Shown: positions 35,634 through 59,981, counted from the first letter of the stretch. The stretch is 64,000 bases of DNA from Zygnema circumcarinatum SAG 698-1b (GCA_037447605.1 CM074814.1:2852001-2916000), one strand, 5' to 3'. Numbers and translations are program-made. The notes: generated by a model from the sequence alone, not told the origin.

Positions 35634-36116
35634 TCAGCAGCGCACGCCGGGGGCGATGGACGCCGCCTTGCCGTTGCGCCACTTGACGGTCTTGGAGCAC
35701 CACGGGAAGGCCTTCTGCCGGTAGTACTGCACCTGCACGAAGCCGTACGCGGGAATCTGCGTCTGCCCGTCGGCGCCGCCATAGTTGAGGCGGCAGAGGA
35801 CGACCCCCCCCGTGGAGAATGTGGCGATGGCGGGCCCCTTCAGGCCCACGTTTCCATCGGGGAAGGAGGCGACGACAGAGGGCCAGGTCGCGCATTCAGC
35901 GAACCAGTAGGTGGTGAGGTCGGAGGAGCAGGGGTTGATGATTTTGTGCGTGAAGAGGTACAGGCTCCCGTTCACAGGCTTGCTGCTGCGAGTCGATGAG
36001 AACTGGACGGAGGCGAGGTTCCAGTCGCAGCTGCCAGCCATGGACGGGAGGAGGGCAGAGAGGAGCGCTAAAAGGAGGAGCTTGCCGGCGGCGGAGAAGA
36101 AGGAGCGAGCCGCCAT
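35634..36116 (-). CDS. Intronless secreted Cys-containing protein, TPD1 (tapetum determinant 1)-like, 160 aa
   Basis: ATG in a GCCATGGCG context (alternative ATG at 36128). Signal peptide KLLLLALLSALLPSMAG. Then C-DWNLASVQ...SKPVNG...KIINPC...C...P...CRLNYGG...IPAYGFVQVQYY...F. The Cys spacing and the I-x-N-x-C and C-x-(L/V)-N-x-G motifs follow the TPD1 pattern. Family call is by eye. Confidence 0.72.
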   Translation of the reverse strand: MAARSFFSAAGKLLLLALLSALLPSMAGSCDWNLASVQFSSTRSSKPVNGSLYLFTHKIINPCSSDLTTYWFAECATWPSVVASFPDGNVGLKGPAIATFSTGGVVLCRLNYGGADGQTQIPAYGFVQVQYYRQKAFPWCSKTVKWRNGKAASIAPGVRC

Positions 36117-36454
36117 GGCGCCCGTCATGAGGGGAGGCGGCGAAGGGGACAAGCGGGCGGAAGGGCGGGCGACGAGACCCGTGGCGGGCGAGCCCTAAAT
36201 TTGTAGGACTCGGGGGCTGGCGTTCCATGTGGCGGAAATTTGACCGCCGTTCGAGATTTGTACGGCCCGGGCGGTAGGCGGTCGCCGGTTCCGGGATTGC
36301 GCATTGGCCAATGGGAGGGATCCACGTAGGACAGGCGGTGGGGGAGTCAGAGGCCCAGTAGGTCGGTGCCGCCGCCAACCGTTTTGGCGGGTTCTGGCCA
36401 TAAGTAGGGCGGGGAGTCGGCGCCAGAAAAAACAAAAGATCGATGACGAAATTC

Positions 36455-36900
36455 GGACCGTACAGTTTCCGGACAAAATTTCGTACATCGTATCCGAGGA
36501 AGCGCAGCGATTGGCGTTTAATGTGTGGACGTTTAGAAGGTATCCAGAGGCTTATGTTGTCGTTTAGTTGGTGGTGGTCGGTGATTTGGAGCTATCGTAC
36601 AGTTGAACCGGGCGGCAGAAAAGCACCCAAAGATTGCCCGTGTCGGTGCCGTACGTATTTGGAAAGCTCACTGAAAAGCGACAAAGAGGAAACGTCTGGC
36701 GTCGACAAATCTGATTGGACAAACCTTGTCGCTTTTCGTGACCTCATAATTACTCAATCGTTCAGTCGTGGATTTTAAGCGTACGGCATCACCAGGTTCG
36801 TTTTTCAAACTGTACGAATGCACCGACCATTTTATGAAGCGCCGCAAAACCGTATCTTACCGCAGACTTCTAGAGCCGTACCGTACGCTTGACTGTACGA
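36455..36900. promoter_or_regulatory. GTAC-rich island upstream of TPD1-like gene 1
   Basis: About 9-10 GTAC cores, mostly CGTAC/GTACG, in ~450 bp (about 2 expected at random). Confidence 0.4.
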
Positions 36901-56300: not shown

Positions 56301-59300
56301 CATGTTTGAGTTTTGCGGAACGCTGAAACCTGCTCTGGTCGACGCCTTTGGTGAAGTCTCCTGCACAGGCCATTTCCTTAGTGGGCAGAAGGTTTTATTT
56401 TAGTGTTACTTCTATTCTGCCGAAGAATGCCTCTAAACCAAAGCTATTTTTTCAAGATGTGCGAGTAAATTGGCTTTTATGGTTTAATCATTAAATGTTG
56501 GAAAGCGTAATAAAATGCTCACACTTAACGTATGGTGTGGTCGGTTTCTGGGGGGAGCAGTCACTAGCAACTCCTCGGGCATCATGGAGGTGTCATTGTT
56601 TGCCAACAGGACCGTGCCGAACACAAAAATTGGGTCAACGTGAGTATTCTCATTCACCGTGACTATACAAATCGATGTTAGAGTCTTTGCCGTACATACT
56701 TCAAGGAATTGCTTCAAGAGAACACGTTATCATGGTCTGCAATGGGGCGCGGGTGATCTGCAGAGACCCATTTGTGAGTGCAATCGAAATTCTCCAAGTT
56801 CACCAGATTGACGCCGCTGTCGAGGCACCACCCCCTCAAGCCATTGCTCCTACAGGGGCTCCTCCCGAAGCCATAGTGACAAAGGAAAGCTCCAAATTAT
56901 GGATGGTCAGTATCCCCCTCTAATGGATAATGTTAAACTTGCATTCTATTGACTACGGCGAAACAATGCCAAGATATCACCATTGTACGAATGTCATATC
57001 ATCATTTAGAGAAGACTCTCTCCCTCTCGCTCTCTCACTCTTACGTTATCTCCTTCACTACGTTGGAAGCAGGGTATAGGAGTTGGCTGCGCTGTTGGAG
57101 CTTTGTTTGCAAGCATTGCTATTGGCCTGCTCGTCGCCTGCTGTTGTATCCAACAACAACGGCATGCAAAGGTGGATGAAGAAGCGCCGTTTCAAACCAA
57201 AAAGGCCGATGCTTCATTCGAAGAAGGTTCATTTACGGAGGTTCCCTCAGGTCCCGTAAAATCCTCAGGTGAACATCGTTTCGCTCTCATCAAGCCAGAC
57301 ACCTCTGATGACAACCTTCAGCTTCTATGAGCTTTTCTGAGATTCTCCCACCATCATAATGCATCTCTGCTGACAGCTACTTCCTTGCGGGCCCCCCATA
57401 CCATGCCAGGCTTCAAGTTCGGTGACAAGTACAAGCCTTCCGGCCCCTCCGACTACGGCACGACCGTGACCGGCCTGTGGGGCGCCCAAGTGTTCTCTAT
57501 GGCGGAGCTGAAGAAGGGCTGCGACGACTTCGCGGAGGAGCACATTGTGGGGCGCGGCGGGTTCGGCGCGGTGTACCGCGCGCGGCTGTGGAGCGGGCAC
57601 ACGGTCGCGGTGAAGCGGCTCGACGCGGGGTCGCAGCAGGGCGAGCGCGAGTTTCTGACGGAGGTCGAACTGCTCTCGCGGCTGCACCACCGCAACCTCG
57701 TCAGCCTCGTCGGGTACAGCGACGAGGAGGGCGACCAGCTCGCGCTCGTCTACGAGTACGTGCCCAACGGCACGCTGCGGGACTACCTCAGAGGTGTGCT
57801 CTGCTGCCTGCCTGCCTGCCTGGGGCTTCTCTCTCTGCTGCCCGCAGAGAATGACTATGTTGAGGGGGAGGGGGAGGGGGAGGGGGAAGTGGTGTATCTA
57901 CTGCTGTTAAGAACAAAATTTAAACCACATCCAAGGGGGAGGGGGAGGGAGAAGGGGTGTATCTACTGCTGTTAAGAACAAAAATTAAACCACATCCAAG
58001 GGGGAGGGGGAGGGGGAGGGGGAGGGGGAAGGGGTGTATCTACTGCTATCAAGAACAAAAATTAAACCACATCCAAGTTTTTTGCTTTTGTTATTCTTTG
58101 AGCAGATTTTGAAGGGAGTGTTATCTTTCGTTTGTGTTGTGCAGACGAAGAGGAAGCGCAGGCTCTCACATGGCCGATTCGTTTGAAGGTCGCTTTGGGC
58201 GCTTCAAAGGGGATTGAGTATCTTCACCGAGGGGCCAACCCTCCCGTTATTCATAGGTAGGTGCTCACCTCCGTTACTATCAGAGATATGAAGAGACATC
58301 AAAGCAGCTCGATCACATGATCAAAATCGATATCATCCTTCATTTATTCTTGTGTTAGCAGAGCCTATTTGTGGCCATGGCTTGCTTTCAACCGTGATAA
58401 AAGCCACCTGACGAATGGGAATAGAATGTCGATTTACCTGGACAGCTTAGCATTCATGGCGAGGAATTCTACGACTAAATGGCATCTTGGTTTGACTCCC
58501 TCTGCAGAGATATCAAAACCTCCAATATTCTGCTGGACTTCAACTTCGAAGCCAGAGTATGTTTCGTTTTCCTTTTCCTGCCCACTGCCTTCTAAATGTT
58601 TCTTTCTTGAGGCCCTTGTTGATTGCTGACATCATGTGATTCGGAGCTTTAGCAATGGACATCCTGGCACAAGTTGTTTCATTTTTAAACGTCGCTGGAA
58701 ATTTCTCAAGCTTCTGAGGCTAGTTGGAAGTTATAACTTCATGAACCCTGACAAACTATTCTAAGAAGAACACGGACTGATTCGGACTCTCACATGCAGG
58801 TGGCTGACTTTGGTTTGTCGAAGCTCGGACGCCACGTGGACGCTTCTGTGAACCCTAGCCACATATCTACCCATGTGAAGGGAACCCTAGGTAATGCACT
58901 TGTATTGAGAGTAGGAGAATGTCTCATGCATCTCATGAGAGAAAAGGCATACTTAGAAAATCCAGTAAATAGTCGAGGAGTTCAGAGTGAATGTCCGGCA
59001 GGTGGATGTTTAATCTCATGCTAACATATTGGCGAGGTTCTATCATGTGCAGGGTATTTGGATCCAAATTATTATGCGAAGCAGCAGCTGACAGAGAAGA
59101 GCGATGTTTACAGTTTCGGAGTTGTGCTGTTGGAGCTGCTCACAGGGCGGCTGCCTGTCTGGCACGAGCTCGGAGAAGGCACAAATGAAGATCGCCTCAT
59201 GAACCTCGTAGATTGGGTGGGAAAGAAACCCTAAAACCGCAAGGCTCCCTTCCTGCTTTGAGGAGCCTAGGAAGTCCCTAAAAGAGTACAGCATCAGCAG

Positions 59301-59981
59301 AGGAAGGGGAAAAAACTGCTGAAAAAAATAATATCAGAAATTTCGTGACGATTAATAGTATGAATGCTGGGATGTGCAATTCTGCAGGTTACTCCCTTCC
59401 TGCTTAACGGAGACATCGAGCCAATCGTAGCCGTTCAAATGGAGATTGGCTCGTATTTGCCATCAATGGAGCGCGTGGCTAACCTCGCCCGCCGCTGCGT
59501 AGATGTCCAGGTAAGCAAGCTTTGCCAAAAACCCACTTTCCCTTTGGAGATGCCACGTCCAGCTCTGCTATAAACCTGCATCTACATTCCTACAACTCGT
59601 CTGTCAAACTGCTGAAGATTTTGAATAGAATTAAACCTCAAAAAGTTTGCATGGTTCCCACAGGGTAAATTGCGCCCTACGATGACGGAGGTTGTGAGGG
59701 AGTTGGAAGCGGCGCGGAGCCTTCTTGGCCCTCAGGAGATGCAGGCGAGCAACAAGGACGAGCTTGACTCGTTTCTCACTAACGTTTCTCGCAAAGGCGA
59801 GGAGGAAGCGGCGGCAGGCACAACGCCCCGCGCAGACTCTGCAGAGAACAGGACAGATGCTCTCTCTGAGCAGAAGAGGACTGCAGAGGGGGAGAGTGTT
59901 GCCCAACAGAGCACGCACATGTGGAAAAGAGAACCTGTGCCTATAAGCTTTGTGAGTGAAGTGGGGAAAATCAGTAAGTAG
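53321..59981 (+). CDS. Receptor-like kinase with tandem malectin ectodomain (CrRLK1L / LRR-VIII-related kinase, no LRR seen), catalytically intact
   Basis: Signal exon 53321-53408. Malectin exons 53716-53933 and 54539-54775 ([23 protein letters not shown]). Exon 55066-55123, then a second malectin (YRLSCG..GRLWKGD), a Pro-rich stalk and a TM ([23 protein letters not shown] region). Kinase motifs: [81 protein letters not shown]. Confidence 0.92.
53937..54465. repeat. (CT)n dinucleotide tract, ~530 bp, forming most of an RLK intron
   Basis: Almost uninterrupted ct repeat between exons 2 and 3. Confidence 0.95.
57891..58077 (+). repeat. Three 45-bp direct repeats separated by (GGGGGA)n spacers, intronic
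   Basis: ggtgtatctactgct(g/a)t(t/c)aagaacaaaa-tt-aaaccacatccaag at 57891-57935, 57956-58000 and 58033-58077. Confidence 0.92.

Follow-up and report, generated by a model that had tools for sequence, protein, structure and literature searches.

A malectin-like receptor kinase and pseudokinase pair flanking an orphan secreted-protein gene in Zygnema circumcarinatum

A 64-kb window of the Zygnema circumcarinatum SAG 698-1b genome (the whole stretch of DNA that was analysed) contains two receptor-like kinase (RLK) genes, RLK-A on the minus strand and RLK-B on the plus strand, which lie back to back with the gene of a secreted protein, T2, between their start codons. The gene of a second secreted protein, T1, lies 4.5 kb from RLK-A, and that of a secreted aspartic protease further to the left. 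All five genes were found at the coordinates listed in Table 1, in DNA that is eukaryotic and rich in introns. The locus probably comprises a CrRLK1L-like kinase/pseudokinase pair together with two orphan secreted proteins that are unrelated to each other. Its layout is as described in an earlier note on this DNA, which had placed RLK-A head-to-head with a secreted-protein gene and RLK-B, on the plus strand, next to it.

Paralogy and kinase motifs of the receptor pair

RLK-A and RLK-B are colinear over ten conserved blocks of 36-51% identity, as compared through pieces of open reading frame (ORF) in six frames (53000-60200, plus strand, against 40300-48000, minus strand), and the intron positions and phases of RLK-A equal those of RLK-B wherever they were compared. 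In both genes, the first of two ectodomain lobes is matched by the Pfam families Malectin and Malectin_like. Single exons of lobe 2 had no Pfam match; the RLK-B lobe 2 exon at 55948-56337 shares 183 features with Malectin_like clusters (score 0.92), and its best named matches agree in 10 of 10 cases. The profile of lobe 1 also aligns with lobe 2, and the two are in register at their Y..VRL.F core (hhalign E 0.0028). Malectin-like lobes (PF12819/PF11721) are present in tandem in the receptor pair and are followed by a short Pro-rich linker, a single transmembrane (TM) helix and an RLK/Pelle kinase domain recognised by Pfam kinase matches. The stretch from the malectin-like domain to the TM helix showed no leucine-rich repeat (LRR) in the receptor genes, which agrees with membership of this receptor kind. 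Among solved structures, FERONIA was the best match both for the kinase N-lobe of the receptors (PDB, E 2.9e-24) and, weakly, for malectin lobe 1.

Malectin-like RLKs are known from streptophyte algae (PMC5002434, PMC7618880), where they are about 1000 residues long, while the CrRLK1L group proper is considered to be confined to land plants (PMC7618880). One of the algal forms, CpRLK1 of Closterium, is required for conjugation (PMC5002434). Judged by sequence, RLK-A and RLK-B appear to be an old inverted duplicate pair of CrRLK1L-like genes, new members of a known receptor kind, and the probable algal counterparts of FERONIA/THESEUS1 and Closterium CpRLK1. The complete exon models of both genes are approximate and have no transcript support over their full length.

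The G+C content at third codon positions (GC3) differs greatly among exons of one gene (regions 53700-59231 and 40598-47446): the TM exon of RLK-B has a value of 0.37 and its kinase N-lobe exon one of 0.94, the extremes in that gene, and the kinase N-lobe of RLK-A has 0.55. Two introns of RLK-B contain repeats, namely a (CT)264 microsatellite in intron 2 (53937-54465) and, in the intron after the kinase N-lobe exon, a 65/77-nucleotide tandem repeat of about two copies with 94-95% matches (57869-58077).

The kinase domains of the two paralogs differ in their catalytic residues. RLK-B keeps every catalytic motif, including the alphaC Glu, HRDIKTSN and DFG, and is predicted to be a catalytically competent RD kinase. 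The ten colinear blocks and the full set of motifs uphold its earlier description as a catalytically intact paralogous di-malectin receptor kinase. In RLK-A, the beta3 Lys is replaced by Thr, HRD has become HGS, and the Lys and Asn of the catalytic loop (42318-42347) are gone, with CS in place of SN. The Gly loop is degenerate (VRTSPFGTVY), the alphaC Glu has changed to Asn, and the activation segment is divergent. DFG is kept; an apparent loss of this motif ('VAGERNF') was rejected when the spliced exon was found to read VADFGQS. With DFG retained but the beta3 Lys, HRD Asp and catalytic Asn all missing, RLK-A has the characters of the di-malectin receptor pseudokinase that it had been proposed to be.

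An assembly gap, a run of N at 42409-42418 that on the minus strand has a long A run on one side and a G run on the other, falls within the RLK-A kinase region. After the upstream exon, whose end at 42530 reads ...TAVH + GG, comes GTAAAAG, and the downstream exon begins at 42348 after ...CATTCAG and reads G/SFTACSVLLD. The intron defined by these borders equals the RLK-B intron at 58257-58507 in codon position and phase, and its junction ranked first in an automated search of stop-free GT..AG paths. We therefore place the gap within an intron of the predicted gene, so that the reading frame of RLK-A would be independent of the true gap length. Stop-free GT..AG joints can connect every conserved block of RLK-A, beginning with the signal peptide (ATG 47751) and ending with the C-terminal tail. 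Furthermore, six transcriptome-sized runs contain 0.31-0.47 of the sequence words sampled from 42420-47760, the fraction expected of spliced mRNA.

The best reading of RLK-A is that of a pseudokinase gene that is expressed and not dead. That it is a decaying pseudogene is very improbable: four catalytic features are lost, the activation segment has diverged, and the exon models lack transcript verification and include an assembly gap, but that gap is intronic, every conserved block is open and joinable by GT..AG introns in the phases of RLK-B, DFG and the structural motifs are kept, and the six runs contain the gene at the level of a spliced transcript.

Two orphan secreted proteins

The T2 gene, for which a five-exon model had been drawn from the sequence, is borne out by RNA contigs. 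Its coding exons (50069-50162, 50356-50604, 50842-50921, 51013-51153 and 51471-51587) are joined at four GT..AG splice joints, and contigs from runs X1, X2, X3 and X5, which belong to three studies, agree exactly in all four. The 5' untranslated region begins at or before 49850, with contigs running about 16 nucleotides beyond this position, and the 3' untranslated region extends to about 51865. Intron 1 (50133-50383) and intron 4 (51124-51490) are retained in low-depth RNA contigs, which represent either pre-mRNA or minor intron-retention forms.

The T2 product consists of a signal peptide, a charged pro-region, an RRRRL motif and a basic C-terminal domain of 120 residues. This domain has a mass of 13.5 kDa, an isoelectric point of 9.0 and five or six N-glycosylation sequons, and its only Cys residues are at positions 116 and 226. 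These features suggest that T2 would be secreted, N-glycosylated and cut after RRRRL by a subtilase to release the basic domain. An unspliced ORF with T2 exon 2 had no match among 5.8 billion protein clusters, and exons 3-5, used as single-exon queries, had none in Pfam (E <= 10). T2 is best explained as a lineage-restricted gene that is probably unrelated to the receptors. The possibility that T2 or T1 is a free malectin lobe was considered and rejected, with hhalign probabilities of 0.1-3.8%.

T1 has six Cys residues, at positions 30, 63, 75, 108, 140 and 160. Its GC3 is 0.89, compared with 0.45-0.61 for neighbouring housekeeping exons. Searches of Pfam (E <= 10) returned no family, sequence and profile searches of the PDB no chain, searches of 5.8 billion protein clusters no match, and exact look-ups of T1 with two alternative starts no record. 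A phmmer search of 1.84 billion representatives retrieved a single protein, P0001 (L001:7001-8170), with an E value of 3.7e-8 and 43% identity over residues 70-156. P0001 is lipoprotein-like, has two FN3 domains and is encoded on a bacterial-looking metagenome contig; T1 resembles its C-terminal domain. The two have in common the elements CRLNYGGADG..QIP and VKW.NG, of which the conserved core CRLNYGGADG lies at 35766-35795 in T1.

The search for further relatives was extended from this pair. The P0001 domain retrieved only itself and one fragment from the protein clusters, and the T1/P0001 alignment found no relatives in 185,579 prokaryotic genomes and JGI metagenomes. AlphaFold models of T1 were mostly beta-strand and of low confidence (predicted local distance difference test, pLDDT, 38.8 alone and 39.8 with its one homolog). 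The best ESM Atlas scores for T1 and for the P0001 C-terminal domain, 0.81-0.83, are at chance level. Since P0001 is its sole relative after exhaustive searches, we take T1 to be a genuine coding sequence whose domain is very rare. The gene was possibly acquired from bacteria; its lack of introns, its high GC3 and its bacterial relative would fit such an origin without proving it.

Both secreted proteins had been labelled TPD1-like in the earlier note. TPD1 is a protein of 176 amino acids with a 21-residue signal peptide and a conserved C-terminal domain; it has Cys residues at 77, 107, 111, 120, 142 and 175, the first four of which are essential, and a KR cleavage site at 135-136, and its 13 kDa mature form binds the LRR domain of EMS1 (PMC4990239). 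Searches by sequence and profile detected no TPD1 domain in T1 or in T2 exons 3-5, and tied neither to any plant family, although the Pfam copy used was not confirmed to contain a TPD1 model. The phmmer search of T1 is for this reason the stronger negative: among the 1.84 billion representatives, no plant protein reached E <= 0.001. T2 lacks four of the six TPD1 Cys residues, including three of the four essential ones. In T1, the Cys spacing is 33/12/33/32/20, compared with 30/4/9/22/33 in TPD1, so that neither protein has the six-Cys pattern. Nor was a relation between T1 and T2 detected (BLAST E 0.47; hhalign probability 0.2%).

The TPD1 label for T1 and T2 is thus unsupported by Pfam, PDB and phmmer searches, by the Cys pattern and by the comparison of the two proteins. 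For the gene at 35634-36116, the earlier claim of a second secreted protein holds insofar as there is an ORF with a signal peptide, on the minus strand, and is unsupported as to its likeness to TPD1. We consider it unlikely that T1, T2 or both belong to the TPD1 fold or family and have diverged too strongly for sequence methods to show it. Such a relation would fit their size and layout, in which a signal peptide is followed by a variable N-terminal region and a C-terminal domain of some 100-130 residues, with a mature mass of about 13 kDa. It would also fit the six Cys residues of T1, three of whose spacings are near those of TPD1 (33, 12 and 32 compared with 30, 13 and 33), and the mostly beta-strand, if low-confidence, models of T1. 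However, neither T1 nor T2 exons 3-5 had a Pfam match even at E <= 10, the phmmer search of T1 yielded no plant protein, no match was found between the two proteins, T2 has kept none of the Cys residues but the first and the last, the overall Cys spacing of T1 is unlike that of TPD1, and the sole T1 homolog is a bacterial FN3 lipoprotein. The proposed module, in which a TPD1-fold ligand is paired with the malectin receptors, has lost part of its basis.

Linkage, expression and neighbourhood

With a kinase/pseudokinase pair and two unrelated orphan proteins as the preferred description, the cluster would have arisen by tandem duplication in an otherwise ordinary neighbourhood. Like many pseudokinases among plant RLKs, RLK-A would most likely have the role of a scaffold or co-receptor, and T1 would be a separate orphan sharing a domain with one bacterial lipoprotein. 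Zygnematophytes have about 75-142 RLKs (PMC10868138). Given this number and a sizeable share of genes for secreted proteins, neighbouring RLK and secreted-protein genes are to be expected by chance, and by a rough estimate several RLKs per genome would have such a neighbour.

Several observations weigh against this description. RLK-A and RLK-B have diverged to 37-50% identity but are still adjacent, arranged divergently around T2, and their kept adjacency could result from selection for linkage. The T2 RRRRL motif is of the RRxL type used in RALF maturation. T2 and RLK-A are head-to-head, with 2.3 kb between their ATG codons, and both are present in run X1. The full exon models of the receptors lack transcript verification, and T2 appears an unrelated orphan at the level of its sequence.

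The expression data on a coupling between T2 and the receptors are mixed. Depth was zero over the intergenic DNA and over RLK-B exons 1 and 2 (53275-53930) in each of the four runs with T2. This indicates that the T2 contigs are transcripts and not DNA carry-over. It also means that expression of RLK-B, as judged from its 5' end (exons 1-2), was undetected in the runs that contain T2.

Reports of RALFs begin with the bryophytes and do not include chlorophytes (PMC12069490), and consequently no ligand is known for the algal malectin-like RLKs. Some RALFs are matured by S1P cleavage at RRxL (PMC4990239). That the Zygnema cluster may be a ligand/receptor module is an attractive idea, for which gene adjacency is the sole evidence. 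In its specific form, such a module would have the 13.5 kDa domain of T2 as the ligand of the flanking receptors, with RLK-B signalling and RLK-A serving as co-receptor, and in an alga that has no RALFs it would be a functional analogue of RALF-FERONIA. We regard this as quite improbable. The physical arrangement of the three genes, the RRRRL site and secretory features of T2, the head-to-head position of T2 and RLK-A with their joint presence in run X1, the pairing of a kinase with a pseudokinase paralog, and the lack of known ligands for algal malectin-like RLKs (PMC5002434, PMC7618880) speak for it. Against it, nothing but adjacency links the genes, depth over RLK-B exons 1-2 was zero in four of four T2-expressing runs, and T2 is missing from the protein database searched. 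Moreover, linked ligand-receptor loci are not known to be common in plants except at self-incompatibility loci. The further-reaching idea that T2 is the endogenous ligand of both flanking receptors, with RLK-A as co-receptor, and that the linked locus represents an ancestral or parallel protein-ligand system of the CrRLK1L type, is a slightly longer shot still.

At present, the locus is an annotation result, namely a CrRLK1L-like kinase gene, a CrRLK1L-like pseudokinase gene and two previously unannotated orphan secreted proteins. In land plants, malectin-like receptor kinases govern fertilisation and the integrity of the wall; in Closterium they govern conjugation. Algae are reported to be without RALFs. 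T2, situated between a kinase and a pseudokinase, is a concrete and cheap ligand candidate.

No further paralogs of the RLKs, T1 or T2 were found in the 64-kb window, whose other genes are of the housekeeping type (an RRM protein, Rab GDI/REP and Ycf48/HCF136). The exons of the aspartic protease gene, at about 28600-33280 on the minus strand, match the Pfam families TAXi_N, TAXi_C and Asp, placing the product in family A1, and contain the catalytic motifs DTGSD (32050-32064) and DSGTT (30077-30091). These matches confirm the secreted aspartic protease reported to the left of the cluster, and its sequence is that of an ordinary plant-type secreted A1 protease. A (ATCCGTTC)100 microsatellite occupies 36944-37744, in the interval between T1 and the RRM gene. 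An Rfam scan of 33000-64000 gave no match; this includes a 41-nucleotide element at 52306-52346 with an internal inverted repeat (GGCAT...ATGCC). The element recurs in many RNA contigs with unrelated flanks, at a summed depth of up to about 1200, and has the look of either a short repeat that is dispersed or a hairpin resembling a small RNA. A second short run of N, at about 12100-12200, lies in a low-complexity stretch and gives X residues in the ORF translations of both strands.

Table 1. Positions of the receptor genes, the secreted-protein genes and further features in the 64-kb window.
Feature	Position	Strand	Basis or remark
RLK-A, malectin-like receptor pseudokinase	40595..47751	-	Colinear with RLK-B; Pfam; stop-free GT..AG path
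RLK-A lobe 1	~47446-46838	-	
RLK-A lobe 2	~45101-43673	-	
RLK-A TM helix	43475-43407	-	
RLK-A kinase	43137-40598	-	Stop codon 40595-40597
RLK-A beta3 VAVTRW, catalytic Lys to Thr	42973..42990	-	Aligned with RLK-B VAVKRL
RLK-A catalytic loop, intron-split, TAVH-G + SFTACSVLLD (RLK-B PVIH-R)	42318..42543	-	RLK-B alignment
RLK-A intron holding assembly gap 42409-42418	42349..42529	-	GT..AG, phase 2
RLK-A DFG kept, VADFGQS	41947..41967	-	Spliced exon reading
RLK-B, malectin-like receptor kinase, intact RD-kinase motifs	53321..59981	+	Pfam, motif reading, FERONIA match
RLK-B TM helix	57076-57147	+	
RLK-B GRGGFGAVY (Gly loop)	57550-57576	+	
RLK-B VAVKRL (beta3)	57604-57621	+	
RLK-B HRD, intron-split	58252-58256/58508-58511	+	
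RLK-B DFG	within 58800-58820	+	
T2, secreted pre-pro-protein gene, 226 amino acids	50069..51587	+	Spliced RNA contigs
T2 RRRRL, candidate subtilase (S1P-type RRxL) site, residues 102-106	50565..50579	+	Sequence motif
T1, intronless ORF, 160 amino acids, signal peptide	35634..36116	-	ORF reading
Aspartic protease, secreted A1, nepenthesin/TAXi type, multi-exon	27896..33280	-	3' limit as in the earlier note
(GAGG)n microsatellite, (GAGG)181	49102..49820	.	Between RLK-A ATG and T2 ATG; ends just 5' of T2 transcript start

Comparison with known receptor systems

As at the Brassica S locus with SCR/SP11 and SRK, the gene of a small secreted protein adjoins receptor kinase genes in Zygnema. The receptor and ligand families differ between the two, and the Zygnema linkage is known from gene positions alone.

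With TPD1-EMS1, T1 and T2 share a small size, predicted secretion, an N-terminal part that varies and a C-terminal domain of roughly 100-130 residues, and the predicted mass of mature T2 (13.5 kDa) is close to that of TPD1 (13 kDa). Unlike TPD1, they show no detectable sequence relation to it and lack the conserved Cys pattern. The KR site of TPD1 lies inside the C-terminal domain, whereas RRRRL precedes the domain in T2, and the TPD1 receptor is an LRR-RLK (PMC4990239), whereas the neighbours of T2 are malectin RLKs.

The mature RALF peptide carries a YISY-type motif after the RRxL site. Like the RALFs of the RALF/CrRLK1L-LLG system, T2 is a predicted pre-pro-protein with an RRxL-type site before a basic mature part, and its gene adjoins those of malectin-like RLKs. 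RALFs are about 50 residues long, have four Cys residues and are not N-glycosylated (PMC5002434), whereas the mature part of T2 has 120 residues and two Cys and could be glycosylated; T2 does not qualify as a RALF. No RALF-like motif was seen in T2 on inspection by eye.

A partnership of RLK-A with RLK-B is suggested by paralogy and adjacency only, which sets it apart from the RLK pseudokinases STRUBBELIG and BIR2, which act as scaffolds or co-receptors. RLK-A nevertheless resembles these proteins in that it is transcribed and, although the catalytic Lys, Asp and Asn are missing, still has an ectodomain, a TM helix and a kinase fold with DFG.

From the CrRLK1Ls FERONIA and THESEUS1 and from CpRLK1, the Zygnema receptors differ in that the ectodomain similarity is distant and one of the two copies is a pseudokinase; the likeness is one of domains. 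All have two malectin-like lobes, one TM helix and an RLK/Pelle kinase.

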